From NCBI RefSeq assembly GCF_000143415.4, contig NW_003314360.1, positions 426,595 through 490,594 on the forward strand: 64,000 bases of DNA. The letters are read 5' to 3'. The notes beneath the pieces are model-generated. The model was not told the DNA's origin, searched no databases, and was given only the letters and a program-made list of their open reading frames with translations. A program made the position numbers and the translations under genes. Below, in pieces: positions 2,743-57,721 of this stretch. The DNA is from Selaginella moellendorffii (taxonomy: Eukaryota > Plantae > Lycopodiophyta). The stretch's first letter is position 1, and every line of letters begins with the position of its first letter.

Positions 2743-3150
2743 TCACTCCGTAATCTATGTACCTCCGTAGATGGAAGGGCGATTTGTTGGTTGTGTCGAG
2801 GCACTTGTCGAGTCTATGGGGACAGTGTTGAGTGTGGCATCATGGACACTGGCTGCTGCTGTCAGTGGGACATGGTGGGCCTGAATCAGACAGACCGCAG
2901 AGCAGAGCCAAGCACAAAGGTGACGGTGGCTGCTGCGCTGGGCCAGGTCCTGGAGAGCATTAAGGCAAGAGGGCTCGCTGCTCTGTTCCAGTGGCAGGGG
3001 CTGGCCTGGGTGGCGATTGCATAGGATTTCTCCCTCCTCCATAGCCACAAGAAACAAAAAATCCAAGTGCTGGGACTTAGAATTTTTTGCGCTCAGTGTT
3101 TGAGCGTTGTGGGCCGCTAGATCAAGAGGATCTGACGGTGGAGGATAAGC
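2743..3150 (-). mobile_element. Truncated copy of the Penelope-like element found at 19920-20920
   Basis: Near-identical reverse complement of 19920-20320. It includes RRYIDYG (degenerate YIDD) and then breaks off at ~2743. Confidence 0.65.
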
Positions 3151-5420: not shown

Positions 5421-8070
5421 TCACATCTTTCTCGGACGCTTTTCGGTATGCCTTACAGCTGCAATCTGCTCGATCATACCAAAATTGGAGCCGATAATAA
5501 CACTCGAGGCGTATATATCCATCGGATTAGACTTTTGATATGAGAGAGCTGATGAATTGTCCTTGTCCGAGAAAAATACGTATCCAAAGTTCGTTCGAGC
5601 ATACTCTACAGAAGACAAAAATTAAAAATAAACGAAAAACGTATAACGTATGGACTTACTTTCATCGCCAGGCTGCTCATTGTTCTTGATAGCAATCAGT
5701 CTTCGGACGTCACTCTTAAGATTTCGAACGACTTCCGACCAATCCGCAATGGCTGGCTTAAGAGGGTCTCCAGAGCACTTGCTTTGGATGTACAAAAGAA
5801 AAGGCTCCAAATCCATGTCTTTTACTTCCTTGAGTATCAGGAAGGTATCAGCCCCGCTGTTCCGAGGTCCACAGATGGCCCAAGTCCCTGACCTTTGAAC
5901 CTCCTTTTTTGAGCCTGGACTACTGTGTTTGATCCGAAACCAAAAAACTAAAAACAAGAACATACCTGGACTCAGTTGCTTGATTGAAACTGGAAAAGTG
6001 GGGAACCTGAACTTTCGGTTCTTCAGATTGTCAGGGATGTACCAATCGCAAGGCAACACATCCGCCAGCATGAAGGTGTCTGAACCCCCCGATAGTAACT
6101 GCAAATAACAACATGTTAGTAACCGAGACTATGAAAGACTATGAACGTAGAATTCACATACCTTATGAATGTAGATGCTGAAGATCAGAGACAACAAATC
6201 GTTGTCTTCCTTCTGCTTCCAATCATCCGTTGACATTGTTGTCAAATCAAAAGTTGTAGAGCCAAAAAGGTCCTCCCGCTGGAGTGTTAGCTTATGCAGT
6301 AACACAGGTGAAAACTCCACCAGAGCCTTTTCTTCGTCAAGATTGGGAACGTCCACCACAGCCACTACTCCACAACTCTCCAGAGCTTCCCATGTCAAAA
6401 CATTCTCTCTTGGAAAGGCCTGCAGCAGAACCGGTTCCTTCCTTGAGACATGCTCACGAAGCATCGATGCTTGAATTGCTCGTAAGAGATAAGGAAATCT
6501 CTCATCCCCGGCAAAGCCATTGTAATACTCGAATCTTGTGCATAGGCTCCACACACGATCCAGAATCCGCCTTACTTTGTCTCTCAGGAAGGGCTCCTGA
6601 ATTCTCAGCGCAAGGTTGTCAATGTCAAGGGCCATGTCTGGGTCATCTGAAGCCAAAGCCTGAACCATGAAGGTAATCAACCTCGGATTCCCTCCGCTCA
6701 GCTTGCACAACAGCCGCATGCCATCATTTAAAGCGTGAAGTTCTTCACGGTTTGAAGTCCTCAGCACCTTGTTAAAGACTTGCAACACCAGCTTCTCCCG
6801 ATCGCTGCTGCTGAGAGGGTTGACAGGAATATAAATCACTTTAGATGATCCAGTGTCACCGCTCTCTCTCAAAGATGCCGCTGTGAAAAGGTTGGTCGCT
6901 CCGAGCATAGTGACAAACGTTTTGCCACCCGCGTTCCTGTGCTTCCAAACTATGAACTCCCGAAACAGTTTCTGAACAAGGACGTTGTTCCTCCCAATCT
7001 CATCAAAGAAGAACGACAGGTAAATGTTTTGGTCTCCGAGCTCGCAGACTTCTCGCAACAAAGCTATCACGTCATCAAACAGGAGGAACTTCTTCAAATC
7101 AGGTGCTTCGGCATCAACAACAGCGACAAGCTCTTGGTAAGGAAAGCGCGTCCAAGTCCCAGTATCTTTTCTGATGTTATCTTGGCCATCTGCTCTAGAA
7201 ACAGCTGCATGCAAAGTCCTCAGGGCCAAAACCTGAGCATCACCCAGCCCGGCCTCGCCATGAAAAGTTGAAATAAAATCATGGTACATGAGCACGTCGA
7301 GATGTTCAACGGTGCTCATCATGGCCTCCCACGGTCGCACCTCATCGGTTGATGTATCGAAAATCGAGGCAAGTTCTTGAATCCTTAGCCCTGGATCACT
7401 CCGTTGCCTTCTCATCTCAATGAGTATTTGTGGGAGTGCCTTGCCAAGGGATGTTTTTCCCGCACCCGGGAATCCAACCACACCCATTATATGGTGGAGG
7501 CGCCTAAACATCCCAGTCTGTGTGTTGACTGCTCATGAATTGCTTGTACAACAGCCAGTTACCCCTGAGCAAAGCATACACAGTATTCTCTCGTCCAACA
7601 ATGGGAAACTGCTGCCCGATGTCCTTCAGAGACAAGCCAGTTGGCAAAGAAGATAATGAATCCCTTTCAAGGCATTTTCTGTACGTGCGGGCATGCTTAA
7701 GACGAGGTCCAAAGAGCTCCTTCAGCTTGGCAATCCGATCACGGGCGTTTGACCAAACAACTCCACTAGAGGGAATGAGCTGCTGACGGAGCTGCTTCTC
7801 CTTCTCACGGAGCTGCTTCTTCTCATCACGGAGCTGCTTCTTCTCATCCATCCAGTGCTTCTGAAGCTCACCCTGCGTGGAATCCACCTTCTGCTCAACC
7901 TGCTCAATCGCTTGTTGCACGGCCCTGATCTCCGATTCCACTTCCTCAATCTGCTGCTGAATCGATCGCTCAGGCCCATCCGCCCTTTGCCGCTTCCCAG
8001 CCCTGATATCTGATTCCAATTCCTCCCCATCCGCCCTTGGCCGCTTCCCATGAGACTGCTCTCGCACCAT
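5421..8070 (-). pseudogene. Crinkler/RHS-type protein: coiled-coil header, P-loop NTPase and PD-(D/E)xK-type nuclease-like C-terminus; one frameshift at ~7505
   Basis: EKKQLRD/E heptads, IVGRE, Walker A GFPGAGKT, Walker B FFFDE, SGGNPR and C-terminal NSGADTFL...LYIQSK. Three short GT-AG introns join ORFs 6129-7511, 5622-6104 and 5421-5618. Confidence 0.7.
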
Positions 8071-10659: not shown

Positions 10660-12410
10660 CTGTTGGATCCTCCACCGTTGGATCGTACAGATCTAACAGC
10701 TCAAACGCTCAGCCTTTGAGTTGCCAGAAATTTCTAAGTCCTAGCACTTGGTTTTTGGCAATGGAGAGGAAGCTACGTGAGCATGGCAGCTACGCCTTGA
10801 GCACGCCACGGCCCAGGTCACCACAGCCAGCTGCTCCAGCAGCAGCAGCAGCAGCCGCCGACGCAGGCAGCGCCAGCCACTGCAACAGCCCGCGGCCTGC
10901 CAACACCAGCAGCTGCTGCAGCTGCTGCTCCAGCCGGCCAGCCAGCCGTGCCACGGCCGGCCTCCAGCGACTGCCACAGCGAGCACTTGGGCCAGCACTC
11001 GCCGCCCAAAGCGCCTGCCCTGTGGCTCGTCGTGGCCCAGCCCGTTAGCACTGCGTCCCGGCCAGCCGCTGCCCAGCAGCACCACCAGCGCTGCCCAGCA
11101 GTGGCCAGCTGCGCCAGGCACCACCGCACGACGCTACGTGCTGCCCAGCAGCACCAAGCACCGCCACACGCCTTTCAGGGCCGCCACACGCCGCCCAGAG
11201 CCGCTGCGCCCTGCCTAGCGCCCCCCCGCACCGCCTGGTGCCAACAGCAAACCAAGACAACTCCATACGTGACTTTGGGACAGGAGAAGCCAGCCATGAT
11301 GCCCCTTACTCCCTGCACACGGGTCTGGCACAGCAAGTCCCCAGGCCGGGCATTTCCGTAGGTCCCTGTGTGCGCTGCACCTCACAGCCAGGACGCCACA
11401 GAAATCCCTGCCTGGAGCTGCTAACCGCCACTAAGAGTCTGGGAGCTAGCTCGGCCTCTCCACACAACAGCTTTTCTGGCGTCTAGTGCGGCCCAACTCC
11501 CCTAACTCAAGTCTGGCACAGCAAATGCCCCACAAAGGCTTTTTGGCCCCCCTTGGTTGCTGCCTCAGCACCACCAAGGGATCTCCAAAAATGCTATGGG
11601 GATTGCTCCCTGCTGTTGAGAGCACCCACACCACCCAGACATCACCACAAAGCTGCTGTGATCCACCAGAATCTGCCGTGGGAGACACAATTGCAACCGC
11701 AATTGCAAATGCCCGCCTCTGCTTCTCCAGCATCCTCTCCACCGTCAAATCTCCCGATCCAACGGTCCACATGGCCCAAGCCTAGGCTATGGAGGAGAAA
11801 GATGCAAGGAGCAGTCATGACAGGGCATTCTGTCTTGACCACACCACAACATCAAGCCAACGGCAAGCCAGGACAACTCCAAGCATGGTTCTGGATTCAG
11901 AGAAACCAGCCATGCTGCCCCTCTCTCGTCTGGCACAGCAAGTCTCCAAGCCATGCATTTGCATTGGCCCCTGTGTGCTGCACCTCGCTGCCACAGTGCC
12001 ACAAAAAATCCCTGCCTGGAGATGCTCATTGCCACTAAGAGTCCGCCACAGGGCAGGCGCTTTGGGCGGCGAGTGCTGGCCCAAGTGCTCGCTGTGGCAG
12101 TCGCTGGAGGCCGGCCGTGGCACGGCTGGCTGGCCGGCTGGAGCAGCAGCTGCAGCAGCTGCTGGTGTTGGCAGGCCGCGGGCTGTTGCAGTGGCTGGCG
12201 CTGCCTGCGTCGGCGGCTGCTGCTGCTGCTGCTGGAGCAGCTGGCTGTGGTGACCTGGGCCGTGGCGTGCTCAAGGCGTAGCTGCCATGCTCACGTAGCT
12301 TCCTCTCCATTGCCAAAAACCAAGTGCTAGGACTTAGAAATTTCTGGCAACTCAAAGGCTGAGCGTTTGAGCTGTTAGATCTGTACGATCCAACGGTGGA
12401 GGATCCAACA
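10660..12410. mobile_element. GC-rich repeat-family sequence spanning the palindrome centre; its ends are related to 3030-3150 and 19920-20040
   Basis: cctccaccgt...gatct...aacgctca...ttctaagtcc(c/t)agcacttgg occurs at 10668-10751 (mirrored near 12320-12403) and at 19921-20002 (mirrored near 3064-3145). There is an internal ~200 bp direct repeat, 11240-11439 and 11856-12043. Confidence 0.55.
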
Positions 12411-12508
12411 GCCAGCGGGAATGCCACTTACCGGACTCTCTCGAGTCGGACTGCATAATTCAGGTCCGAGCAGTGAAGGCAAACTTTCACCCATGAGATA
12501 TAACGCTG

Positions 12509-13131
12509 TCAGAGGTCACGCAGCACCTTCCAGATTTTCATCCCAGTGACTCCGTCATTCAAACACACACCTTCCAGGTCGTACAGATTCAATCTGCCGT
12601 GAAGCTTTGGCAGAAGTGAGGCAGATAGGAAATCTGCATGATTCGCAAAAGCGGAGCTTAGCACTTCATAGAATACGCACCAGTCGCGCAGCATAAGCTC
12701 TCATATAAGAGGACACAGCTTAGAGGAGCTGTAAATCCCGTGTTCCCACCATGCATCCAAGGCTTGAATCAGAAACGTGTATCTGTTCGTGAAATATAAA
12801 ACGCGAGTGCTTCGAGACGACAGTAGCGTGCTGTGCTTATGCACCAGCCATCTGCAAAATTCAACGTTTAAGCAAGGAAAACAAAATTTCCAGAAAATAG
12901 TATAGTCAGGAGGCACGTACCTTGGTAAGTTGGCTTGACTTGAGCCGACGAATTTCTCCCACAGACAGTCTGATGAACACAGAGCGTACCAGTGCTTGCA
13001 AACTTGTCTTGATGAAGATAAGTCTCTCGCCGTCATTGACGTAAAGACACCTCGTCTGGGATAGCGGAGATTGGACTCTGGTTGGAGCTCCCAGTTGTGC
13101 CCAGTCGAGTTTGTGCGAGCGTTGCACAGAC
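12509..13131 (-). pseudogene. F-box gene fragment (palindrome copy)
   Basis: Mirror of 9940-10562. Confidence 0.5.
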
Positions 13132-13350
13132 TCGTCCTTGAGCTTGTTTTCTTCTGGAGTGTGTAAAGAAAGCCACAAGAGTGACCACAGAGCCGGCCGC
13201 TTCTGATCCTGGTGAATTTCAACAAACGAAAATGTGATGCCTGGACTCGGGATCTCTTTCTCAGGAACTCCCCGAGGATCGCATTCCTTACCGCTGCTCG
13301 CGTCCGACTTTCTCAGCATCGTCTCCAGGAGTGGAATCTGGTTCGCCACT

Positions 13351-14901
13351 CGCCAGTCACAGACCATCTTCCGACAGACGTAATCTTCACATTAACTTGC
13401 TTCCAAGAAGGCCCGGTACAGCTGGAAGTAGAACTTGTACACAGGCCAACCTGCAGAGACGTAGAACAAAAGAAAGAATACCAGATGAATTCCATCAGCA
13501 GCAGTGTTGGTGACCCAGACTCGGTACGTTTCACCTCCATTCCTGCGTAAGGAGTGAACGATTCGAACAGACTTGTCAAGGAACGGCTTCGTTTCTTCAC
13601 TTCGAGCGTTGGAACCCGTTTCATTAGAGCCGCCGGTGTTCCTGTCTAAGGATATTGACAGGATAAACACTAGTGACAGAGAGAACCATTCAGTAGCATG
13701 TACAGAGATTACCTACCTGGTCGAGGGTAAAACTGTGATATGTGGACCTGTGGGAACGTGTACTCTCGTATTAGTTCCATGATCCTGTCAAAATCCTCTG
13801 ATGTTTCTCCTGACAAGGATAAAAGCTCAATAAGATACAATCTTTTTCATGCATGCGAGTGTACCTGGAAATCCACAGATAATATCTGTAGCGATATGAA
13901 TCTCCGGGACTAGTCTTGTGAGAGTATCCACAATTTTTCTAAACTCGGAAAACGTGTACTCCCTCTTCATGCCCTGAAGAACACAGAAAACGGCTTACAG
14001 AGACAAAACAATCACCCAGAACATCAGTACCTCCAACACCGAGTCCCTTCCAGATTGAACCAGAACATGAAGGAACGAATACACGCAGGGGTGACAGCCA
14101 TTTCCTCCAGATGCTGTAAGATGTAGATTCGGAGCATTGTACTTCTGTCTATGAGGAAGCGCGGCAACTAAAGCACGTAGAAGCGCTGGTATATTTGCTC
14201 CAATATCTCGTCCTGTAGTGCAAAGAAAGAAAAAAGTAAATAAAAAATGCTAGCTTGAAACAGATAACCATAACCGTAAGCTCCAGTGTCGCCATATCTC
14301 CTTCACACCTTCAGACACCACGGTTTTCAATCTTTGCACCTGTAGATAAAGCTCAGTAACAGAGAAAAGAAACTGGCGAAGGTCCTTACTAGTGCGTCTA
14401 CTGTGTAGCTGCCAAGATGCCCGCGAGCATGCTTCGTCTTGCAGTATGTGCAAGCACCCAAGCAGCCAACGTTGATAGGAATGATCTCGACAAACTTGTT
14501 CTTACGAACCTGAAAACACAACAGCAAAAGAGATTATAAACTTTTGGCAAATCAAGAGACGGTAAAGCATCCCGTCGAAGCAGCTAGGCCTCGTGGCCTT
14601 TCAAAGTCTCCCCCGCTGTATTTGCTGCACTCCGATGACGCTGACGGCTTTGAGATCTTTTAAACCCTGAAGAACGCATCCAGCTATCCACCAAGGGAAT
14701 AGAGGCCGCTTTGCCTTTACGTATCAGTGTTTCCATTGTCGGAGCTTTCACAGTACACCTGCGAATAAAACAGCAGCAACAATTGATCCAGCTTAAGATT
14801 CTTCCTTTTGATACTGAACTTACGTGTTGATCAGCCAAAGATCTCTCTGAGGAGAGTCCGAGATGGCCATAAGCCTGAAGCTGTCCTGCCATATACTCAC
14901 T
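13351..14901 (-). pseudogene. CDKAL1: CDKAL1/MtaB pseudogene (palindrome copy)
   Basis: Mirror of 8170-9720. Confidence 0.85.
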
Positions 14902-15000
14902 GCCGAGTCAACATTAGTTCTTTTCTACGTGAACCTACTCCAGTCTTCCATTCTACGGCTAGAACCCTAAAAAAGAGAGTACCTAGGTTAGGGTTCCGCC

Positions 15001-17649
15001 ATGGTGCGAGAGCAGTCTCATGGGAAGCGGCCAAGGGCGGATGGGGAGGAATTGGAATCAGATATCAGGGCTGGGAAGCGGCAAAGGGCGGATGGGCCTG
15101 AGCGATCGATTCAGCAGCAGATTGAGGAAGTGGAATCGGAGATCAGGGCCGTGCAACAAGCGATTGAGCAGGTTGAGCAGAAGGTGGATTCCACGCAGGG
15201 TGAGCTTCAGAAGCACTGGATGGATGAGAAGAAGCAGCTCCGTGATGAGAAGAAGCAGCTCCGTGAGAAGGAGAAGCAGCTCCGTCAGCAGCTCATTCCC
15301 TCTAGTGGAGTTGTTTGGTCAAACGCCCGTGATCGGATTGCCAAGCTGAAGGAGCTCTTTGGACCTCGTCTTAAGCATGCCCGCACGTACAGAAAATGCC
15401 TTGAAAGGGATTCATTATCTTCTTTGCCAACTGGCTTGTCTCTGAAGGACATCGGGCAGCAGTTTCCCATTGTTGGACGAGAGAATACTGTGTATGCTTT
15501 GCTCAGGGGTAACTGGCTGTTGTACAAGCAATTCATGAGCAGTCAACACACAGACTGGGATGTTTAGGCGCCTCCACCATATAATGGGTGTGGTTGGATT
15601 CCCGGGTGCGGGAAAAACATCCCTTGGCAAGGCACTCCCACAAATACTCATTGAGATGAGAAGGCAACGGAGTGATCCAGGGCTAAGGATTCAAGAACTT
15701 GCCTCGATTTTCGATACATCAACCGATGAGGTGCGACCGTGGGAGGCCATGATGAGCACCGTTGAACATCTCGACGTGCTCATGTACCATGATTTTATTT
15801 CAACTTTTCATGGCGAGGCCGGGCTGGGTGATGCTCAGGTTTTGGCCCTGAGGACTTTGCATGCAGCTGTTTCTAGAGCAGATGGCCAAGATAACATCAG
15901 AAAAGATACTGGGACTTGGACGCGCTTTCCTTACCAAGAGCTTGTCGCTGTTGTTGATGCCGAAGCACCTGATTTGAAGAAGTTCCTCCTGTTTGATGAC
16001 GTGATAGCTTTGTTGCGAGAAGTCTGCGAGCTCGGAGACCAAAACATTTACCTGTCGTTCTTCTTTGATGAGATTGGGAGGAACAACGTCCTTGTTCAGA
16101 AACTGTTTCGGGAGTTCATAGTTTGGAAGCACAGGAACGCGGGTGGCAAAACGTTTGTCACTATGCTCGGAGCGACCAACCTTTTCACAGCGGCATCTTT
16201 GAGAGAGAGCGGTGACACTGGATCATCTAAAGTGATTTATATTCCTGTCAACCCTCTCAGCAGCAGCGATCGGGAGAAGCTGGTGTTGCAAGTCTTTAAC
16301 AAGGTGCTGAGGACTTCAAACCGTGAAGAACTTCACGCTTTAAATGATGGCATGCGGCTGTTGTGCAAGCTGAGCGGAGGGAATCCGAGGTTGATTACCT
16401 TCATGGTTCAGGCTTTGGCTTCAGATGACCCAGACATGGCCCTTGACATTGACAACCTTGCGCTGAGAATTCAGGAGCCCTTCCTGAGAGACAAAGTAAG
16501 GCGGATTCTGGATCGTGTGTGGAGCCTATGCACAAGATTCGAGTATTACAATGGCTTTGCCGGGGATGAGAGATTTCCTTATCTCTTACGAGCAATTCAA
16601 GCATCGATGCTTCGTGAGCATGTCTCAAGGAAGGAACCGGTTCTGCTGCAGGCCTTTCCAAGAGAGAATGTTTTGACATGGGAAGCTCTGGAGAGTTGTG
16701 GAGTATGGCTGTGGTGGACGTTCCCAATCTTGACGAAGAAAAGGCTCTGGTGGAGTTTTCACCTGTGTTACTGCATAAGCTAACACTCCAGCGGGAGGAC
16801 CTTTTTGGCTCTACAACTTTTGATTTGACAACAATGTCAACGGATGATTGGAAGCAGAAGGAAGACAACGATTTGTTGTCTCTGATCTTCAGCATCTACA
16901 TTCATAAGGTATGTGAATTCTACGTTCATAGTCTTTCATAGTCTCGGTTACTAACATGTTGTTATTTGCAGTTACTATCGGGGGGTTCAGACACCTTCAT
17001 GCTGGCGGATGTGTTGCCTTGCGATTGGTACATCCCTGACAATCTGAAGAACCGAAAGTTCAGGTTCCCCACTTTTCCAGTTTCAATCAAGCAACTGAGT
17101 CCAGGTATGTTCTTGTTTTTAGTTTTTTGGTTTCGGATCAAACACAGTAGTCCAGGCTCAAAAAAGGAGGTTCAAAGGTCAGGGACTTGGGCCATCTGTG
17201 GACCTCGGAACAGCGGGGCTGATACCTTCCTGATACTCAAGGAAGTAAAAGACATGGATTTGGAGCCTTTTCTTTTGTACATCCAAAGCAAGTGCTCTGG
17301 AGACCCTCTTAAGCCAGCCATTGCGGATTGGTCGGAAGTCGTTCGAAATCTTAAGAGTGACGTCCGAAGACTGATTGCTATCAAGAACAATGAGCAGCCT
17401 GGCGATGAAAGTAAGTCCATACGTTATACGTTTTTCGTTTATTTTTAATTTTTGTTTTTTGTAGAGTATGCTCGAACGAACTTTGGATACGTATTTTTCT
17501 CGGACAAGGACAATTCATCAGCTCTCTCATATCAAAAGTCTAATCCGATGGATATATACGCCTCGAGTGTTATTATCGGCTCCAATTTTGGTATGATCGA
17601 GCAGATTGCAGCTGTAAGGCATACCGAAAAGCGTCCGAGAAAGATGTGA
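15001..17649 (+). pseudogene. Crinkler/RHS-type NTPase+REase gene (palindrome copy, with an extra frameshift at ~16705)
   Basis: Mirror of 5421-8070. Introns at about 16909-16971, 17105-17155 and 17411-17464. Reads gagtatggct versus gagtagtggct in the left arm. Confidence 0.7.
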
Positions 17650-19919: not shown

Positions 19920-20920
19920 TCCTCCACCGTCAGATCCTCTTGATCTAGCGGCCCACAACGCTCAAACACTGAGCGCAAAAAATTCTAAGTCCCAGCACTT
20001 GGATTTTTTGTTTCTTGTGGCTATGGAGGAGGGAGAAATCCTATGCAATCGCCACCCAGGCCAGCCCCTGCCACTGGAACAGAGCAGCGAGCCCTCTTGC
20101 CTTAATGCTCTCCAGGACCTGGCCCAGCGCAGCAGCCACCGTCACCTTTGTGCTTGGCTCTGCTCTGCGGTCTGTCCGATTCAGGCCCACCATGTCCCAC
20201 TGACAGCAGCAGCCAGTGTCCATGATGCCACACTCAACAGTCCCCACAGACTCGACAAGTGCCTCGACACAACCAACAAATCGCCCTTCCATCTACGGAG
20301 GTACATAGATTATGGAGTGAGCACTTGGACAGGTACACAAGCAAGCCTCAATCGATGGCTCCGAGGATATGGCACGTTATGTCCCTTGATCAAGATCATC
20401 CCGGTGATCTCGCTCGAGGAGTTGGATTTCCTCAATATCCATTTCTTCAAAGGCCCTCACCTTGAAGAAACAGGCTGCCTTGACTCGTCCATGTTCCAGA
20501 AGCCCCTCAATGCCTACCAGTACCTCCCCTGGCCGTTGGTTCACCCATGGCACTAGAAAGTGGCATTCATCCGCAGTGAGCTCCGGAGATACCTCCTCTG
20601 CGAGAGCACGGCCGATGGATTCTATGCAATGCGCACGTGGTTCTACCACTGCCTCCGTGCCTGGGGATACTCAATGTCATTCCTCCAAACTGCTTCTCCT
20701 GCATTTCCCACGACCAGTGACATCAAGCTCTCCTCGCACGTTTGTGCTGCACTAGTGGCGTTTGTCAACAGGCCCCCCTCGCCTTTAAGCTGCCCTACAC
20801 ATTTCAAGGTTTGGGGGACATCCTAAACCCTAAACAGGTGATGGATGAAGCTCCCGCAGATGCACTCCCTTGAGTGATCACGTGCTGGAGATGTCTCCCG
20901 AACCCCATTCGTTCCTGGTC
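19920..20920 (+). mobile_element. Penelope-like retroelement remnant: RT motif C and thumb; RT N-terminal part missing; no GIY-YIG seen
   Basis: RRYIDYGVSTWTG (YIDD>YIDY), LDFLNIHFFK, FQKPLNAYQYLPW..HPWH*KVAFIRSELRRY...FYHCLRAWGY, then AFKLPY...ITCWRCLPN. These are characteristic PLE RT C-terminal/thumb motifs. Confidence 0.85.
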
Positions 20921-21074
20921 AGGGCTAAACTCGCTTTGCAAGCTTAGTCACGTCTTCTATTGCGCTTTGCAAGAGACAGAAGGATACATTTGCATCCTTT
21001 TCCGTGTAACCGCTGACCTTCAGTGTCTGGCCGATGGACTCTAGGTATGTCCCAGTCACCTCAGGCCGTTCCCC

Positions 21075-21475
21075 ACCGGTCAACGACCGGTCAACGCTCA
21101 GTCTACTGTCAAAACCGGAATATTTCCGAATATTCCCTGACAGTCAGATGGTTGACCGAGTCAACAAGGCCTACACCATTTGATTTTGCACCTCTCTCCA
21201 AGGGTGACTACGTTGGTCTCATCTCCTTACGATGAACACCACACCTTGGAAACTTTGTGAATCTTATAATGGTGCCATCGACGTGATGTCAACATGTCAA
21301 CGTCACGTTGCAGGCAAAGGGACCTTGGGTACGTACCAGTCACGTTCGAGTCAACGCACGGTCAACGAAACGTCAACGGTCAGAATGGAATGTTCCTGAA
21401 TATTCCCTGACAGTCTTTTGTTGACCGGGTTTAGGGTTTAGGGATCAACGGTCAACGACAGAATATTCCCTGCAA
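21075..21475. repeat. Short direct/inverted repeats (ggtcaacg, gaatattccctgacagtc) with an embedded TTTAGGG x2
   Basis: gaatattccctgacagtc at ~21128 and ~21398, repeated cggtcaacg, and gggtttagggtttaggg at 21427-21443. Confidence 0.6.
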
Positions 21476-21553
21476 CGTTTTTCGTCTCCAGGTATGTACA
21501 AATGACACAAGCATTGTGGACGTAATGCATGCATCATATCATGCCGCGTTTAA

Positions 21554-21992
21554 AAGTTATCTTGTGTCAAAGGTACATCACCTGCCGGACGAACGCTTAC
21601 TGTCTTCGGCAATCCGCCGAAGTCATTCTCCGTGACTACCACTGCTGCTGAGTAATGCACTCCAACTTGCTACGTTCGCACCTTCGCGAGCTAATGCTGC
21701 CACACCACCTCACATGGCCGCCACACGGACTCGCACCAAGTAAGAGAGCCAGAATATAAGTAGAGTCGACACCGAGCTAGGGTTAAGGTAAACGCTAGAC
21801 GACTACACCCGGCTGATGAGTCCCAAAAAGGATGAAACTTGTTTTGGGTTGTCTCTTGTCCTCTCCCTCGCTCACGAATGAATGAAAATTCATTCCCTTG
21901 CCTCCTCTACTTGCTCTTGATCATGCTGTCTCAACAACGGCACACGGAGAATGAGGATTGCACAAAGTGGTGCCGTGATCTTGCCGGATTGC
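21554..21992 (+). mobile_element. Penelope-like pLTR copy 1 (hammerhead-bearing)
   Basis: Clearly alignable (diverged) reverse complement of 23311-23749. It is in the same sense as the upstream RT and is followed by A11-CCCTAA. Confidence 0.75.
21807..21849 (+). ncRNA. Minimal type I hammerhead ribozyme (degenerate copy, GUU site)
   Basis: ACCCGG-CTGATGA-GTCC-caaaaa-GGAT-GAAA-C-tt-GTT-TTGGGT: conserved core, stem II and stem I pairing. Confidence 0.8.
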
Positions 21993-23211
21993 GCCGGAAT
22001 TAAAAAAAAAAACCCTAATGTTGGACTATTTTTGGGGAGGCAGTGGTGGAAGGCGCCCAGTACCATGGCTGCTGTGATCGGAGGCACAGCCAGAGGTAGA
22101 AGAGTGCTTAGAGGAGAGCGTGCAATTTCCCCACACTTGCTACCGTCAACGGGGGCATCTGCCGTGAGATCCAGGGAAGCTTCGTTCCCCTATTTTTGCT
22201 TTTGCTGTGTACTCACTCTCATGTCAATAGCATGGAGAACAGCTGCAAGGGAGTCACAGCATCCACGCCCATCAATCTAAGCTCCCATGGTTGTGGAGTG
22301 TGAGGTAGGGGCCTCAGCATTCGGCTCCCACGAAAAGGACTGTTACAAGGTCGGGGGTCTGGAACATGCACGGCAGCAAGCCAGGATGGGAAAGGGCCCT
22401 CTGTATCTATGGCCAGAACACTGCTGTGCAAGGCAGCAAGTGAGCCACGCAAAGCAGCAGCCCAACAGGATAAGAACCGTGGGATAGAAGTGGTGGACGT
22501 TTCTAGGTTGGGAGATGGCCAGGTCCTGGAAAAAGCTGGAAGTGTAAGCCATGCTAGAGGCAAAGTGTCCACTGAGAGTGGAGAAGAGGACGAAGCTACC
22601 TCCCCTCACCCACTTGCTTGGTCATTGGCTGGAGTGCAAGAACTTCGTGAGAGTCTTAGGCCAGTCACAAGTCAGGAAGGCTTGCAGGGAATCATCCCAA
22701 GCACTTTTGCAGCTGAGGAGGTTCACAAGGATGGATGTCTCATAGAAGTGCAGGAGCGGTGCACCAGGGTCAGGTCAGGAGTCACCACTAGAGCAGCAGC
22801 ACGTGCAGCAGCAGCAGAGCTAGGGCATGGGACAGGAGAACTCAAGTCTGCCCCACCTAGAACGACCAAAAACAGAGAGGAATAGGGCCCTAGTGTGGAT
22901 GCACTTATGTCCTACAGGATCAACATGGAGGCCTCACTAGAAGGTGAGTTCACAATCCTTCACTTAGAGACACAATCAAGCCAGGAGCTCTCCAGGGAGA
23001 CTGACTGTTCAGCCGTGGCCTCAGGGTTGAACAAGGAACAGCCACTCTGGACACTAAAGTTTGCCCATAGATGCTTGTTGGACTTGATGAACAAGCCCAA
23101 AGCTTCACTTCCATCTTCACCAGCTTGTTCCTGAAGTGTGAGGTCCTGATCCAGCTCACAGCCCCTAGTGGTGAGGGTCTACACTGACTCAAGACAGGTT
23201 GGAGACAGCTA

Positions 23212-23289
23212 GGTTTAGGGTTTAGGGTTTAGGCGCATTTAGGGTTTAGGCTTTAGGGTTTAGGATTTAGGTGCATTTAGGCATTTAGG
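23212..23289 (+). repeat. Interstitial degenerate plant telomeric repeat array (TTTAGGG)n
   Basis: ggtttagggtttagggtttaggcgcatttagggtttaggctttagggtttaggatttagg... Confidence 0.9.
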
Positions 23290-23310
23290 TCAAAGACACC
23301 CCGTGCTGCT

Positions 23311-23749
23311 GCAATCCAGCAAAATCACAGTGCCACTTTGTGCAATCCACATTCTCTATGTGTCGTTGTCAAGACAGCGTGATCGAGAGCAAGTAGAGGA
23401 GGCAAGGGAATGAATTTTCATTCATTCGTGAGCAAGGGAGAGGACAAGAGACAACCCGAGACCAGTTTCATCCTTTTTGGGACTCATCAGCCGGGTGTAG
23501 TCGTCTAGTGTCTACCCTAACCCTAGCTCGGCATCAACTCTACTTATGTCTGGCTCTCTTACTTGGTGTGAGTCCATGTGGCGGCCATGCAAAGTGGTGT
23601 GGCAGTGTTGACTCGCGAGGATGCGAACATAGCAAAGCTGGAGTTGGTTACTCAGCAGCAGTGGTAGTCACGGAGAATGACTTCGGCAAATTGCCGAAGA
23701 CAGTAAGCATTCGTCCGACAGGTGATGTACCTTTGACGCAAGATAACTT
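23311..23749 (-). mobile_element. Penelope-like pLTR copy 2, inverted
   Basis: Reverse complement of 21554-21992. On the minus strand it is followed by CCCTAAA repeats. Confidence 0.75.
23454..23496 (-). ncRNA. Minimal type I hammerhead ribozyme (GUC cleavage site)
   Basis: Minus strand reads ACCCGG-CTGATGA-GTCC-caaaaa-GGAT-GAAA-C-tg-GTC-TCGGGT. Stem I is ACCCGG/TCGGGT, stem II is 4 bp, stem III is minimal. Confidence 0.88.
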
Positions 23750-23759
23750 ATAATTTTGT

Positions 23760-24220
23760 ACAAAAGACTCCTTGTTTAAGTTCCGTTGAAGCTAACTTCT
23801 TCAATACATGTCTAATGTCTTTTCCCTGTGTCTATTTCTTTTTGGTCCTGATTAGTATTTCTTCCTCTTCATCATCCGAGTCATCATTAACATGAGAAGA
23901 TTCACCTTTAGTGAACTGCTTATGTTTTAAGATTCCTTGAGACAGTGAATCAACACTTTCTTCATCTGGTGTATTAGCCAATGTGATCATGTTACAATAG
24001 GCTTCTCATAATCCTTGTATATAAGACAAACTCTTGCCTTTGTCGGTGATGAGATCTTTACATTTCTTTGCATGTAATTTGAATCGTCTAGTATAGTCTT
24101 GAATTCCTTCCTTTGGTCGCTGTTTTATATTCTTAATGTGCTTATAATGCTCCTTTGGTGTTCCTCCAGCTGGGAATTGTTCTTTGACACCAGTGCACCA
24201 ACATGTATTTAAAACATGCT
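23760..24220 (-). mobile_element. Retrotransposon gag fragment
   Basis: Minus-strand translation KNIKQRPKEGIQDYTRRFKLHAKKC...YIQGL resembles the gag QxxxExxxxYxxRF motif. Stops are present. Confidence 0.55.
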
Positions 24221-25593
24221 ATAGGTCACAGCTTAGGAACTTAGTTCCTCCGCACTGCCAAGTCCTCTCGCTTGGCAAGTCGGTGATCATACATGGACTC
24301 CTCCATGCTCGGCCCCATGGGCCACCCTTTTTGAAGTTAGCACCTTCAACTAGGGGATTTGTTCCCTTGACTTGCCAATCTCGCTTAGCAAGTCATTCGG
24401 CCAACGTAACATGGTTCATGCATAAGTGTGAAAGTCCTTAACCATCGACTTTCGTTCAAAGCCCTCTCTTTGAACACTCGGGAACTACTTCCCCAACCTT
24501 GATAGCTTCGCCTCATAGCCAGCTTCAAGACCACGCTTCTGCTGCACCATTTTAATTTCGCGCACTCTATGAACCATTTACACTTAGCTTTCTAGGTACT
24601 TATCTACCTAGAATTGTCTTCGGGAACCTTCAAGGAACTCTGTTCCTTAGCTTGCTAAGGTTTCTCCTTTGCAAGCTCCCTACCCACCATATGGTCTAAC
24701 ATGGATAATTCCACATTTTAGACTCTCCATGGCACCCTGGTCGGTAGTAACAACGTGCTTGAGCACCCACTTGATTCTCCACCCCTAACTTACATAACAA
24801 CCTTTGGTCATGCCTGTCAATTCCTATAATTTGGTTCTATCTTTTTACTACTTGCCTTTTGACCCCATACATTTCCTTCGGTCATTCTCCTCCAGACTAA
24901 GAAGATAGCTTTGCACTTTTTATCATGCCTTAGCAAGTGTTCATAAGGATGAACCTATCTAACAGCCTAGAGAGTGGTTCCTCAATTTGGGTTTGCTTAC
25001 TTTGTAATCCCACACATTGGGCTTACCATTGCTATTTAAGGGCATTTGTATGTCTATCACTAACCTTGCCAAAATCCCTTTTTGGCTTTGTCCAATTTGG
25101 GTAGACGGACTTTTCCCGTCTCCACAACCTTGGACATTTAGATAACACTTTTTATCCATCATTCGTTAAAGACTTAGTCCCTTGGGCCTTATCTATTGCC
25201 CTATACTAAACACCACCTCTTGATGTTCTAGAGTGTTTAGGTGTCCCAATGATGGCCTCTTTGACAATGAGCATTTCTTTTTATGACATTGACTCACTAT
25301 TTCGCAATATAAACAATTTATCCCCGATAAAGGTATATCTAACTTCTTTATGCTATTAAGAAGTTTTGGGTAGTTACCTTCTACCTATTTAACCAATTAC
25401 CTTGCACCTCTTGCTTAGTTGCCTTATAGTTGTCATGTTTTACAACTCATTGCTAGTGCTTCCACACCTTTATCATTATCCGGGTCACCACACTCTACCA
25501 CATGCCTTCTAACTTAGCCTATTCCATTCCCATTTCCATTGGGATTCCCTTGGAAGGGGTTCTCATAAACTCGCCAACTTAACCTCAAGGCAA

Positions 25594-28373
25594 CATGCCT
25601 TGCTACATTCGGTGTTTCCACACCATCGACTCCATGAGCTTACCTCTATGACACTTTTTATTTGTGTTTAGGTCTTTACTAAGACCAATACAATGGTCTC
25701 TTATGCCAACTATCCATTAACACTACACCATAGAATTTATGCACAACTTTGTGTTAAAGTTGTTTTCTTCCGAGAAACTCTTTCCCATGACTTTAGTATG
25801 GCACATTCTGCCACTCATGAGATACCCACTATTCTCATACTTAAACCTTACGATCCTCCTCGTCCTTTGTGGGGCACCATACACTTTAGCCCAAATGCTT
25901 TTTCCAATCCATTAGAACCATTCCTTGACTCTTCTTGAGTCATCTAGTATTTTTGGACTTTGGTAAACCAACGACCCCTAAGGTCCTATTTTTGAGATGC
26001 CAGCTCACTGGAATACAACTTCATGTATTCATGTTCTACTCATAAGGACCATCTTGCAAGTGTTACTCCAACACTTTATTATTTTCCGTTCTTTGTGGGC
26101 TACTTTTGCCCCTTAGGACTATCCGTCCCCATGATGAGAATATCGACTCATCCTTTGAGCACACCCCTGGGTTTGTTCCAGCATTTATAAATGGTAGCCC
26201 CGGCTACCATTTCAAGGACTCATGTCCTCATCCATACTTGACCTCTCACGGTCATCAATTCCGATCTCAATTTCATGAGTACCAGCCTCAACTATGCAAA
26301 GATAATTTTGTGACTCCTTTATTGTTTTGGAGTCTCTATCTTCCCCGTGATCCCAACTATAGTTGTTTACCACAACTACATTAGCCAGTTTGTTAAGTCA
26401 AATGCTCATCTGGATCACATCCTCAACTCAATGAGGAAAACTTTGCACTGTTCCCAAGATCCCAAAGTCGTTCCATTATTGGCCCTTTTCTATCCACCAC
26501 CTCACCTACACGTTCACACATGAACTGTAGTGGAGAGCCATGTCTTCCCGACTTGTTATTCCTCACGGATAGGCTCACTCCTAGGACCTTCCAATACCAA
26601 TATTAGTGGTGATATACTTGAGCACCAATAAAAGTCGGACCAAGGAATAGCTCCGATACTAAGTTGTAAGCGACTAAATTTTTCATTCTACTTTAGTCAC
26701 TTAACCACACCTCCGACCACTTGGAAGAGTCTCATTCACAACCTCCATAAGTCCTATTTTAGACTTAGGGACTTGCTAGCCCCAAGAATGGCATCCATAC
26801 CACTCAACCATTGTACTTGGTCCAAGTGCTCCATGTGTTCGATCCAATGACTGACACCCCAAGGTACTACCGACAGATCGGCCCGTTACACTAAGGCCAT
26901 GCCCATTCACCTTGGTCACACCGGTGGTCTGACACCACCTCCATCACAGTCCCGTCTCTCAAAGACTGGGCCATTCGTCCATGAGCGATCATCCTAGATT
27001 GACTCCTTAGCATCCTTAGGATGCCCACAGACATGGGGAATAGCCTTCCTCAATATCGCTTTTCTAGTCCCAACCAAGTCCCTTTCTGCTCATGGCCGTG
27101 TTCGCCAACATTGCCACTGGATCGAGGCCCACCGGCCAGACCACTAAGTCCCACAGTCTTCTGGGACTTCCTCACCACCTGACTGTATCTTTGGTCACTA
27201 CACCAGAGGATTGCTCTTCTTCCTTTCCACAGTCTGGGCCTTTGGGACAACATTTCGGAACACCGTGGCCTTACGCGAGCCTCATGGGTACTCTCCCCAC
27301 CTTCTACCTTTGGGTGCTCTAGCCATGGGCTTAGAGCAAGGTTTCGTTGAGCCACAACAAGTATCCAAGTAGGTAGTGCCACCCACACTTGGACTGGGAG
27401 CATCGGCTAGTCGATCTCCCGGGGGAATTAGAACCAGCTCTTGAACACTTCACCAAACTACCCCGCTTGTCAGTCCATGTTCACTCTAGTTTTGGACTTC
27501 CCAATGGGCAGCTCCTCACCCAACACTGGGTATAGGCTTCCTGGGCCAAACAGGCCTTTCCTGGCCAAACTGGCTCCACTGCAATCCTCCCCCTTACTAT
27601 ACTTTTGGAGCTCACCAAACCCCCTAGGGTTTGGGAGATGAACGCTTGGGCTTTCACCCTCGCAGACTCAAACTCAAACTCGGACTCGGATTAGGACTCG
27701 GACTTGGGCTTGAGCTTGGGCTCAGCCTCGGTCTTGGCCTCTGCCTCGGTCTCGGTCTCGGTCCCGATCTCGGTCTCGGTCTCGGTCCCGATCTCAGTCT
27801 CGGTCTCGGTCCTAGTCTCAATCTTGGTCCCGGTCTCGGTCTCGACCTCGGACTCCATCTCGGGTCCTTCTCGGATTCCATCTTAGATTCCATCTTGGGT
27901 CCATCTCCGACTCTAACTCGGACTCTGTCTCGGTCCATCTCAGACTCCATCTCGGACTCCATCTTGGGTCCATCTCAGACTCCATCTCGGGTCCACCTCG
28001 GACTCTAACTCGGGTCCATCTCGGACTCCATCTTGGACTCCATCTCGGACTCCACCTCGGGTCCATCTCAGATTCCATCTCGGACTCCAACTCGGGTCCA
28101 TCTCGAACTCCATCTCGGACTCCATCTCGGGTCCATTTCGGACACTTCCACATGTCATGTGTTGGTCCTTTTGGGTCCTTTTTTGGAGCTTTGCTTATTG
28201 CTCGTTTCATGCTCGTTCCTCAAGCACTTTGTTAGGAGTTCCACTCCCGCTCTCGACCTTTCAAGTCAGAGCTTTTAGTCCAAATGTGTTACGCTCATTT
28301 GGCTTTCGCTGCGGCCACTACCACGTGGTGCTCTTTTGGCTCCACTTTGGGCCTTAGGGATTTGTGTTTCACA
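25594..28373 (-). mobile_element. LTR retrotransposon remnant, unit 1: internal segment, PBS and LTR (26665-28373, TG...CA)
   Basis: gctccgatacta (26650-26661) is a degenerate reverse complement of the tRNA-Met PBS tggtatcagagc and lies next to tgtaagcg. The unit is repeated at 28376-30763. Confidence 0.7.
27660..28145. repeat. 6/12-bp minisatellite (ctcggt / ctcggactccat / ctcgggtccat) inside LTR 1
   Basis: Directly visible tandem units. A shorter homologous array lies at ~30330-30620 in LTR 2. Confidence 0.92.
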
Positions 28374-28375
28374 AT

Positions 28376-30763
28376 CATGCCTTGACACATTTAGTGTTTC
28401 CACACCATCAGCTCCACGAGACTACATTTATGATACTTTTTACTTGTGTCTAGGTCCTTGCCAAGACCAATATAGTTCTTTCTCATGCCAATTATATGTT
28501 AGCATTGCACTATAGAGTTTACACACAACTTTGTATCAAAGTTGTTTTCTTCTAGGAACACATTTCCCACGACTTTAATATGGCACATTTTGCCATCAAT
28601 GAGATACCCACTATTCTCATACTTGGATATTATGATCTTCCCCATCCTCCGTGGGGCACAACACACCTCTGTCCAAATGTTTTTACCAATCTCTTAGGAC
28701 CATTTATTGACTCTACTTAAGTCATCTAATATTTTTGGACTTTGTTAATCTAATGATCCGCCAGGTCTTATTTTTGAGATGCCAGCTCGTAGGAATACAA
28801 CTTCGTGTATTAATGTCCTACTCATAAAGTCCATCTTTGCAAGTGTTACTCAAACACTTAATTATTTTCTGTTCTCTATTAACTACTTTTACCCGTTATG
28901 ACTATCTGTCCCTATGATGAGAATACTAACTCATTCTCTAAATACACCCCCAACTCCTTCGGTTTATTCCAACATTTATAAAAAGGTAGCTTTGGCTACC
29001 ATTTCAAGGATTCATGTCCTCATCTGTATTTCACCTTTTATGGTTATTATTTTTGGTCTAAAATTCATGAGCACTAGCTTCAACTATATGAGAATAATCT
29101 TGTGACTCCTTTATTGTTTTGGAGTCCTTATCTTTTCCGTGATCCCAACTATAGCTGTTTACCACAACTACATTAGCAAATTTACTATATCAAATGCTTA
29201 TTTAGATCACATCCTCAACTAAGGAAAACTTTATACTTTTCCCAAGATTCCAAAGTCATTCCCTTACTAACCCTTTTCCATCCACCACCTTACCTACACC
29301 CACACATGAACTGTAGTGGAGAGCCATGTCTTCCTGACTTGCTACTCCCCAAGGATAAGCCCACTCCTAGGACCTTCTGATGCAAACACTAGTGGTGATA
29401 TATTTGAGTACCAATAAAAGTCAAATTAAGGAACAGTTCTAATATCAAATTGTAAACGACTAATTTTTCCATTCTACTTTAGTCATTTAACCACACCTTC
29501 GACCACTTGGAAGAGTCTTACTCATAACCTCCATAAGTCCTATTTTAGACTTGGGGCTTGCTATCCTCGAGAATGGCATCCATACCACTCAACCTTTGCA
29601 CTTAGTCCAAGTGCTCTATGTGTCTGATTTTATGCTCGACACCCCAAGGTGCCACCAACATATCAACCCATTACGCTAAGGCCATGCCCCTTCACCTTGG
29701 TCATACCGGTGGTCTAACACCACCTGCATCACAGTCCCATCTCTCAAAGACTGAGCCATCCATCCATGAGTGATCATCCCAAATCCACTCTTTAAGATGC
29801 CCACAAACATGGGGAATAGCCTTCCCCAATATCCCTTTTCCCGTCCCTACCAAGTCCCTTTCTGTCCATGGCCATGTTCGTCAACACTGCCATAGGCTCG
29901 TCCACTAAGTCACATGGTCTTTTGAGACTTCTTCACCATATGACCATATCCTTGGTCACTATATCAGAGGACTACTCCTCTTCTTTTCCATAGTTTAGGA
30001 CTTGGGACAATGATTCGAAATATTGTGGCCCTACGTAAGCCTTATGGGTGCTCTCCCTGCCTTTTGCCTTTGGGTGCTTTAGCCATGGGCTTAGAGGGAG
30101 GTTCTGTTGAGCCACACCAGATATCCAAGTAGGTAGTGCCACCCATGCTTAGATTGGGAGCATTGACCATTTGATCTCCTTGGAGAACTAGAGTTGGCTC
30201 TTGAACACTTTACCAAGCTACCCCGTTTATCGGTTCATATTCACTCTAGCCTTGGACTTCCCAATGGTCATCCCATCACGCAATAGTTGGGTATAGCTTT
30301 CACCCAACAACTTGTATCAGTATTCAGATTCGGATTTAGACTCGGACTCGGACCCGGACTCGGTCTCAGTCTCGGCTGCAGAGTTGGACTCGGTCTCAGT
30401 CTCGGTCTCAATTCCATCTTGGACTCCATCTTAGACCCTATCTTGGGTCCATCTCGGACTCTATATTGGTCTCCACCTCGGGTCCATCTCGGACTCCATC
30501 TTGGGTCCATCTCGGGTCTATATTGGACTCCATCTCAGGTCCATCTTGGACTCCATCTCAGTCTCCACTCTAACTTGGGTCCATCTCAAACTTCATATTA
30601 GACTCTATCTCGGGTCCTTTGTTGGGAGTTCCACTCCCGCTCTCATCTTTTCAAGTTGAAGCTTTTAGTCCAAATGTCTTCTACTCATTTGGCTTTCGTT
30701 TCAACCACTACCATGTGGCACCCTTTTAGCTCCACTTTGGGACTTTGGGATTTATGTCTCACA
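28376..30763 (-). mobile_element. LTR retrotransposon remnant, unit 2 (tandem, diverged): LTR 29451-30763
   Basis: Aligns with 25594-28373. The LTR starts tgtaaacgac and ends tcaca. Confidence 0.7.
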
Positions 30764-55156: not shown

Positions 55157-55163
55157 CTCGTCT

Positions 55164-57680: not shown

Positions 57681-57721
57681 AGACTTGGGAGTTTTAGGGT
57701 TCTTGGAGGAAGCTTTGAGCG

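Follow-up and report, generated by a model that had tools for sequence, protein, structure and literature searches.

A tail-to-tail pair of Penelope-like elements around a broken LINE in Selaginella moellendorffii, probably a relic of layered retroelement insertions

We analysed a pair of inverted arms in a 64,000-nucleotide stretch of Selaginella moellendorffii DNA (hereafter the window; scaffold GL377664.1, ~426.6-490.6 kb of 658.5 kb). The arms derive from Penelope-like elements (PLEs) and enclose the first part of a long interspersed nuclear element (LINE). Lying at 21550-21992 on the plus strand and at 23311-23753 on the minus strand, they are 89% identical over 444 nt by repeat finding and blastn, and self-blast of the arms, the insert and the flanks detected no further copy of the arms or the insert within the window. 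Each arm contains a type I hammerhead motif, whose 26-nt core CTGATGAGTCCCAAAAAGGATGAAAC occurs exactly twice, once per arm, with 0 occurrences expected by chance. The right-hand match to the Rfam model exceeds the gathering score and the left-hand match falls below it (Table 1). In the left hammerhead, the cleavage triplet GUC has become GUU, helix I includes G-U pairs and the helix III palindrome ACCGGU reads ACUUGU. The related loci described below yield 11 Rfam hammerhead matches, 9 of them at 40.5 bits (the telomeric copies). The original prediction for this DNA, made from its letters without database searches, had described two ~440 bp inverted repeats each with a type I hammerhead, and this description holds, with the left motif being the weaker one. 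Since the two hammerheads are on opposite strands, a single transcript could not be cleaved at both.

The arms were compared with 10 S. moellendorffii loci (L001-L010, ~190 kb) that are rich in PLE and LINE sequence. L001-L003 are the loci of the gene for XP_024523476.1 and two paralogues; L004 and L005 were reached through matches of a 158-aa open reading frame (ORF) of the insert to two S. moellendorffii proteins, and L006/L007, L008, L009 and L010 through a longer ORF from L004. Three of the loci (L002, L008 and L001) lie near scaffold ends, with the polarity expected of telomeric PLEs (5' end toward the terminus), and L002 is the terminal array of the same PLE family at the end of GL377664.1. 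Over 443 nt, each arm shows 88-90% identity to L001 4343-4782, to L002 1370-1813 and 8158-8601, and to modules in L008, in agreement with the predicted origin of the arms from a hammerhead-bearing, telomere-associated PLE family. The telomeric PLE copies are 95-99.8% alike among themselves. Derived changes common to both arms number 20, of which 9 are non-CpG, and the private changes number 23 and 29, many of them CpG-to-TpG. By this comparison, the arms are assigned to one old subfamily that has long been inactive; both PLE copies are decayed, mostly through CpG-to-TpG changes, and nothing at the locus looks active. The arms do not form the pseudo-long terminal repeat (pseudo-LTR) pair of one PLE: they are inverted, they flank a LINE fragment and not a PLE ORF, and their 3' ends differ.

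The left arm continues upstream into a longer PLE fragment. Blastn matches are collinear between 20038-21283 and L002 6406-7601 (84%) and between 20807-21283 and L001 3303-3781 (90%), and 21550-21992 matches modules in L001, L002, L008 and L010 (88-90%), all four of which are uninterrupted upstream across the position equivalent to 21550. A 118-aa piece encoded by 20200-20553 matches XP_024523476.1 (S. moellendorffii, 580 aa) with 58% identity and 122 bits. In Pfam, the 580-aa protein matches RVT_1 weakly and shows no endonuclease domain, and the window holds only a C-terminal remnant of the reverse transcriptase (RT). Comparison with the other copies identifies the left arm as the last 443 nt of what appears to be a longer endonuclease-less PLE fragment, not a separate unit, and the inverted repeat has its edge at 21550 because the right copy is 5'-truncated there. 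We rejected a preferred PLE 5' end at this position, as other modules extend further upstream and truncated ones begin elsewhere. The sequence CCTAAACCCTAAAC was likewise rejected as a junction, being a fixed internal PLE motif that recurs in L001. In the tandem-repeat part of the left PLE 3' untranslated region (UTR), a perfect (TTTAGGG)2 in G-strand orientation is found at 21430-21443, and it is absent from the copies in L001, L002 and L010. Zero-mismatch contigs of a small, presumed-RNA public run (adapter-ended) fall on 20300-20860, 21221-21490 and 21580-21781, all in the left PLE fragment and nowhere else, and from these contigs its transcription is possible.

The canonical 3' end of the PLE family is defined by 16 tails in L001, L002, L003 and L008, which read ...GTGCCGCGATCTCGCCGGATTGC-A(G/A)CACC(G/A)CGGGGTGTCTTTGA-CCCTAAACGCCTAAACGCGCCTAAA(C/T)CCTAAAC. 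Such tails are usually followed by (CCCTAAA)n and often by additional copies of this tail with extreme 5' truncation. One tail copy, at L002 1830-1870, runs directly into non-telomeric DNA, and contigs from public runs that match 23258-23450 then diverge to the non-telomeric DNA found from L002 1870 onward. Because the imperfect telomere-like 32 nt are fixed in the tails, even before non-telomeric DNA, they are templated by the PLE. In the fold of the canonical 3' end, the 17-nt site CGATCTCGCCGGATTGC forms the inner stem-loop. The 3' end of the right arm is complete, consisting of the hairpin, GGGGTGTCTTTGA and then the tail with CpG-to-TpG changes. The left arm ends ...CCGGATTGC at 21992, without the outer-stem half and without a tail. 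The possibility that the right arm is a copy of the left one made after the LINE had landed, by local inverted duplication, was rejected because both the tail and the hairpin half, lost from the left arm through the LINE, are still present in the right one.

The segment between the arms is 85-91% identical to five other LINE copies, and this comparison identifies it as the 5' part of a hairpin-targeting, multi-copy L1-type LINE (Table 1). The family extends kilobases past the position equivalent to 23209 and overlaps a 6.8-kb element at L008 10043-16852, whose ORF2 (12223-16743, 1506 aa) matches Exo_endo_phos (4.6e-14), RVT_1 (4.7e-26) and zf-RVT (3.5e-8). The window copy comprises the 5' 1.2 kb only, and the ORF2 domains are those read in this family member; a Pfam search of the ORFs of the insert gave no match. 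In the window, the PLE is interrupted directly behind GGATTGC, at the foot of the terminal hairpin, and an upstream junction after (G/A)ATTG(C/T) is common to the window, L004, L006/L007, L008 and, twice, L010. The same insertion letter is used at six places in five other loci, counting a non-coding partner of the LINE in L001 and L004. The orientation of the LINE relative to its host PLE in the window is also that in L004, L006, L008 and L010. In L008, the LINE lies inside a PLE module between two copies of CGATCTCGCCGGATTGC, which form a 17-bp duplication, and in L001 the non-coding partner is likewise flanked by CGATCTCGCCGGATTGC, with the 17-bp duplication visible. The LINE copies in L005 and L009 have non-PLE flanks.

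At the left junction, A11 and CCCTAA follow one another at 22002-22018. All LINE copies with a full-length start (6/6, the window copy counted) begin CCCTAATGTTGG after a variable filler, which is GCCGGAATT plus A11 in the window, ATTGCGCGCAAAAAA in L004, AGCACATATCTGGCGGTGAA in L006 and CAGATTGTGCGCGCG in L010; the filler at the 5' junction in L009 ends ...AAAAA. Since CCCTAA starts all six of these copies, A11-CCCTAA is the 5' junction of the LINE and not telomere sequence. The proposal that both arms run into telomere sequence at their 3' ends is therefore upheld for the right arm (23210-23289) but not for the left, which is tailless and adjoins a LINE 5' terminus. The middle segment, which had been compared to a tiny linear chromosome, turns out to be the 5' 1.2 kb of a multi-copy LINE without telomeric bounds. 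Telomere-primed retrotransposition, originally envisaged on both sides, survives on the right only, where the arm is attached tail-first through telomere-type repeats, in keeping with priming on a G-strand-like 3' end.

The fillers re-copy the last target bases: GCCGGAATT (21993-22001) comes after GCCGGATTGC, ATTGC comes after GGATTGC (L004 7767-7771), and an A-run is next. This suggests slippage or template jumping as the cDNA is joined. The non-coding partner, ~1.64 kb long, is present at L001 4783-6416 and 12233-13875, at L004 6069-7759 and at L002 8726-8962; it starts CCCTAAGTTG and ends ...GTACATATATGTTTAG, close to the LINE 3' end. The L002 copy is 5'-truncated, preceded by telomere repeats and followed by the 17-nt site and a PLE tail, and because of this placement between telomere repeats and PLE tail the partner also appears to travel in terminal chains. 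Serial nesting is seen at L004 5816-9503, L010 1771-12130 and L006 8667-11332, where a new LINE or partner lands in the downstream 17-bp duplication copy of the previous insertion.

The right junction has a different anatomy. Aligned at the LINE breakpoint, four other copies continue ...GGAGATAGC|ACAGATTGTC (longer: GGAGATAGC|ACAGATTGTCTACAC), whereas at 23209 the window reads ...GGAGACAGC|TAGGTTTAGGG, entering the repeats spelled out in Table 1 and then the canonical tail and the antisense module. The whole telomere-type tract, composed of (TTTAGGG)-like units on the plus strand, spans 23210-23289. Within it, 23258-23289 matches ...GACCCTAAACGCCTAAACGCGCCTAAA(C/T)CCTAAAC in the 16 tails of L001, L002, L003 and L008, and the possibility that the telomeric tract is a fixed internal part of an element is thus borne out in part, for these ~32 nt. 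Mini-tails are interleaved with repeats in the same manner in the terminal arrays at L001 6480-6630, L002 9140-9300 and L008 6061 onward. Specifically, the order of break, perfect repeats, mini-tail, repeats, canonical tail and module matches the chains in these arrays, in which 5'-truncated modules come after telomere repeats, and a PLE RNA primed on a G-strand-like 3' end would be expected to leave the same order. As would be expected of a healed end, the LINE is broken at 23209 and TAGG(TTTAGGG)2 follows, but ordinary DNA lies beyond the module.

Table 1 Features of the inverted-arm locus and copies of its LINE insert. Positions are those of the window unless a locus is named.
Feature	Position	Strand	Remarks
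Old PLE fragment: RT C-terminal remnant and ~1.1 kb 3' UTR, ending at the terminal hairpin	20038-21992	+	blastn to L001/L002/L008
Reverse-transcriptase C-terminal remnant	~20249-20826	+	in-frame stop 20554-20556
CCTAAACCCTAAAC, fixed internal PLE motif inside the end of the RT ORF	20821-20834	+	same motif in same context at L001 11616-11629
Left hammerhead, decayed	21807-21849	+	RF00163, 30.6 bits, below gathering score 34; E 5e-5 in local scan
17-nt inner hairpin TGATCTTGCCGGATTGC, LINE target and duplication site	21976-21992	+	PLE cut right after the last base
5'-junction filler GCCGGAATT + A11	21993-22012	+	partly repeats the last target bases, then A's
First 1.2 kb (5' UTR and start of ORF1) of L1-type LINE; full-length 5' end CCCTAATGTTGG	22013-23209	+	3'-truncated at 23209
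Telomere-type repeats and very short partial tail copy	23210-23257	-	plus strand: TAGG (TTTAGGG)2 TTTAGG-CGCA-TTTAGGG TTTAGG C TTTAGG
Canonical templated 3' tail of right PLE module	23258-23289	-	sense CCTAAATGCCTAAATGCACCTAAATCCTAAAC; CpG-to-TpG decay
Right PLE 3' module, 5'-truncated; hairpin and tail junction intact	23290-23753	-	88-89% to L001, L002, L008 modules; contains arm 23311-23753
Right hammerhead, type I, minimal helix III	23454-23496	-	Rfam RF00163 Hammerhead_1, 35.3 bits; gathering score 34
AT-rich flank, 433 bp	23754-24186	.	no match in the 10 loci or the rest of the window
Truncated very high-copy non-coding LTR-like element	24187 onward		matches L004 12900 onward, L001 18096 onward
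Copy of LINE insert	L004 7776-8969		85% over window 22007-23209
Copy of LINE insert	L005 7719-8752		91%
Copies of LINE insert	L006/L007 9631-10801; L009 5944-7143; L010 5782-6978		85-91% range of the family

On the basis of these observations, we propose that the locus, now decayed and interstitial, is what three layers of retroelement activity on other retroelements have left behind, and we hold this reading with moderate confidence. In the first layer, an endonuclease-less PLE copy lay in plus orientation, of which an RT C-terminal remnant, a 3' UTR with a hammerhead and a terminal hairpin are left. In the second, a full-length L1-type LINE with AP-endonuclease and RT inserted by target-primed reverse transcription at its habitual site, the base of the 17-nt inner PLE hairpin, after GGATTGC. 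The scar of this insertion is the filler GCCGGAATT and A11 followed by the LINE start CCCTAATGTTGG, and the apparent telomere unit on the left is explained because the LINE's own first bases follow the filler. Comparison with other copies demonstrates these two layers. The third layer is suggested by the anatomy of the right junction: the LINE would have been broken 1,197 bp from its start, and the exposed plus-strand 3' end would have been extended with telomere-type repeats. A PLE RNA would then have annealed through its C-strand-like tail and been reverse-transcribed for ~500 nt, which would give the inverted, 5'-truncated right module. Finally, unrelated DNA would have been joined to the far end, with loss of the left PLE's tail and of the remaining LINE. 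We infer that the right junction represents tail-first addition of a PLE to a free 3' end at the LINE break, during break repair or end healing. A stronger form of this proposal, which we consider rather unlikely, is that the junction is a fossil chromosome end, at which telomere repeats and endonuclease-less PLE additions healed a chromosome broken inside the LINE, and which became internal later, as ~200 kb was added distally.

Several observations weigh against this history. The locus is ~208 kb from the scaffold end, and a free end must be postulated. The remainder of the LINE was not found on either strand of the 64-kb window by blastn and tblastn with the L008 LINE, and neither a telomeric repeat nor a recognisable target is present at the truncated 5' end of the module (23753/23754). 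The same join of LINE, telomere repeats and inverted module was seen in 0 of ~20 other modules and in 0/7 other LINE copies sampled, and the window locus is thus a single case. The 9 non-CpG changes shared by the arms may leave room for some duplication history. Lastly, among contigs from four public runs, which cover small shares of the stretch, none spans 21992/21993, 23209/23210 or 23753/23754. These contigs show the insert and its flanks to be multi-copy, with other copies ceasing to match at 21992 and at 23258. No independent allele was available for comparison, the sole close relative of the neighbouring gene being on the same scaffold.

The main rival for the right junction is an ordinary DNA rearrangement (end-joining, inversion or ectopic exchange) that fused the broken LINE to an existing piece of a telomeric or subtelomeric PLE array, or to a module-bearing interstitial telomere tract. 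The tract at 23210-23289 does resemble a slice of the terminal arrays, with mini-tails between the repeats, and in polarity the right arm agrees with the terminal array that ends this scaffold. The surroundings are also heavily rearranged, with a 17.6-kb palindrome that overlaps the 5' part of the PLE fragment and a truncated LTR-like element from 24187. However, the missing part of the LINE is not in the 64-kb window in either orientation, for which reason a local inversion is not supported, and the 5'-truncated module adjoins non-telomeric DNA, whereas truncated modules in array slices have repeats on both sides. We regard such a fusion as possible, and as less probable than not by a clear measure.

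An assembly artefact, in which reads of a LINE copy were chimerically joined to reads of a telomeric array, appears improbable. The failure of contigs from the four public runs to span any of the three junctions would be consistent with it, as would the suspiciously perfect palindrome next to the locus and the known difficulty that PLE structures cause in assemblies (PMC8557442). Against this, each piece is a distinct old copy, 85-91% identical to all others sampled, with no switch in identity seen of the kind that a collapse or mis-join with another copy would produce, and the join at 23209 lies in a unique sequence context outside the shared repeats.

We find very little room for a linear fragment or healed break that had telomeric sequence at both ends and received a PLE at each by telomere-primed reverse transcription. 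Its appeal lies in the tail-to-tail geometry, in which CCCTAA borders the middle segment on the left and (TTTAGGG)n borders it on the right, but this CCCTAA belongs to the LINE, whose family has it as a conserved 5' terminus. The left PLE is, moreover, cut at the habitual letter of the LINE and lacks the 3' half of the outer stem and the tail needed for priming, and the middle comes from the 5' part of a multi-copy LINE, oriented relative to its host PLE just as the copies in L004, L006, L008 and L010 are. Least probable of all is that the 2.2-kb block is a mobile composite, either a retrozyme-like non-autonomous element, as the original prediction had offered as an alternative, or a foldback-type transposon bounded by terminal inverted repeats of 443 bp: a hammerhead in each of two long inverted repeats would suit it, but a search for the insert with the same flanks elsewhere found LINE copies and no second composite in the window or the 10 loci (~190 kb), the left repeat edge is no element end and that arm belongs to a longer RT-bearing PLE remnant, the inverted arms come from separate copies, the hammerheads on opposite strands could not both be cut in one transcript, the flanks show no convincing target-site duplication (GTTTAA left, ATAATT right), and the interior is an identified LINE fragment.

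Other features surround the locus. Beyond the AT-rich flank, the LTR-like element (24187-30617; L004 9507-16265; L001 14590-21466) has ~880-bp terminal repeats starting TGTAAGCG and internal tandem repeats, and the window copy begins abruptly at an internal position. Its depth in a low-coverage DNA run is ~100x that of its neighbours, so its copy number must be very high. To the left lies the near-perfect 17.6-kb palindrome (arms 98-100%), both arms of which include the first ~280 bp of the PLE fragment (2743-3027 and 20038-20320). Since the start of the PLE lies in both palindrome arms, the inverted duplication, or assembly artefact, is later than the PLE. The palindrome arms also contain (5421-8070 and 15001-16783) a gene with a weak AAA/Mg-chelatase-like match, annotated as LOC9637151 with a 640-aa product. 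PPR genes are present in the window at 52913-57773.

Both retroelement partners can be placed among known systems. Endonuclease-less telomeric PLEs are on record for S. moellendorffii as well as for other eukaryotes (Gladyshev & Arkhipova 2007, cited through PMC8557442 and PMC12477314), and type I hammerheads are known from their pseudo-LTRs (Cervera & De la Pena 2014, PMC4209133). The window locus resembles the S. moellendorffii telomeric PLEs in that both arms are 88-90% identical to modules beside PLE RT genes or in terminal arrays, both have a type I hammerhead, the copies are 5'-truncated and reverse-complement telomere repeats form the 3' tail of the right arm. It differs in being interstitial, ~208 kb from the scaffold end, with inverted, tail-to-tail copies that are both decayed and one of which was cut by a LINE and is tailless. 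In the Athena/Terminon chains of bdelloid rotifer telomeres (Arkhipova et al. 2017, as summarised in PMC6431247), 5'-truncated units are likewise arranged head-to-tail and joined by short telomeric stretches, the hammerhead is near the 3' end, and attachment to G-rich 3' ends has been proposed. In the same account, however, the rotifer C-rich stretch comes right after the hammerhead, whereas in the window a spacer of ~125 nt with a stem-loop separates hammerhead and tail; the organism and the telomere unit are also different, and the window has one such join, which is not at an end. A typical PLE arrangement, according to the Fig. 2 legend of PMC8557442, has a 5'-truncated inverted copy abutting the upstream pseudo-LTR. 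Two PLE copies in opposite orientation form an inverted repeat there as here, but as we interpret that legend the truncated 5' ends adjoin, with the 3' ends directed outward. The window locus is not of this type, since its two PLE 3' ends face each other across a LINE fragment.

Sequence-specific non-LTR retrotransposons that target repeats include R1/R2 in rDNA, TRAS/SART in telomere repeats and Tx1 in another transposon. The S. moellendorffii family is similar in that copies of an AP-endonuclease LINE recur at precisely the same point of a multi-copy host sequence, with a target duplication of fixed length, 5' truncations and a non-coding partner sharing its 3' end. It is unlike them in its target, the hairpin that terminates a telomeric PLE. 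For the right junction, a parallel exists in the endonuclease-independent insertion of LINE-1 at double-strand breaks and dysfunctional telomeres, reportedly described by Morrish and colleagues in 2002 and 2007. As in our proposal, a free 3' end primes reverse transcription, the copy is 5'-truncated, target duplication is absent and neighbouring DNA is lost. The two cases differ in that the retroelement in the window is a PLE with a telomere-complementary tail and that the event is deduced from one fossil junction.

The PLE family and its hammerheads have already been published, and the window locus, which appears unique among the loci sampled, adds a further instance of the LINE and one unverified fossil in which a PLE caps a broken LINE. 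For S. moellendorffii, a lone CCCTAA beside a PLE end is to be read as the start of the hairpin-specific LINE and not as telomere sequence, and the apparent double-telomere mini-chromosome resolves to known parts. The window holds one more independent LINE insertion at the same letter, of which the sampled loci give several, including nested insertions of a LINE in the duplication made by another. These repeated insertions strengthen the case for a host-parasite relation between two retroelement classes; literature searches found neither a publication on this relation nor a description of a LINE targeting a PLE hairpin. The right junction is a rare interstitial case of a telomere-tailed PLE joined to broken internal sequence, and it is relevant to the question of whether endonuclease-less PLEs accept free 3' ends of any kind, which one decayed case cannot settle. 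If the junction were truly a fossil chromosome end, it would show PLEs contributing to the healing of a break in a plant, and would document, at one spot, a two-way arms race in which the LINE parasitises the PLE hairpin and the PLE caps the broken LINE.

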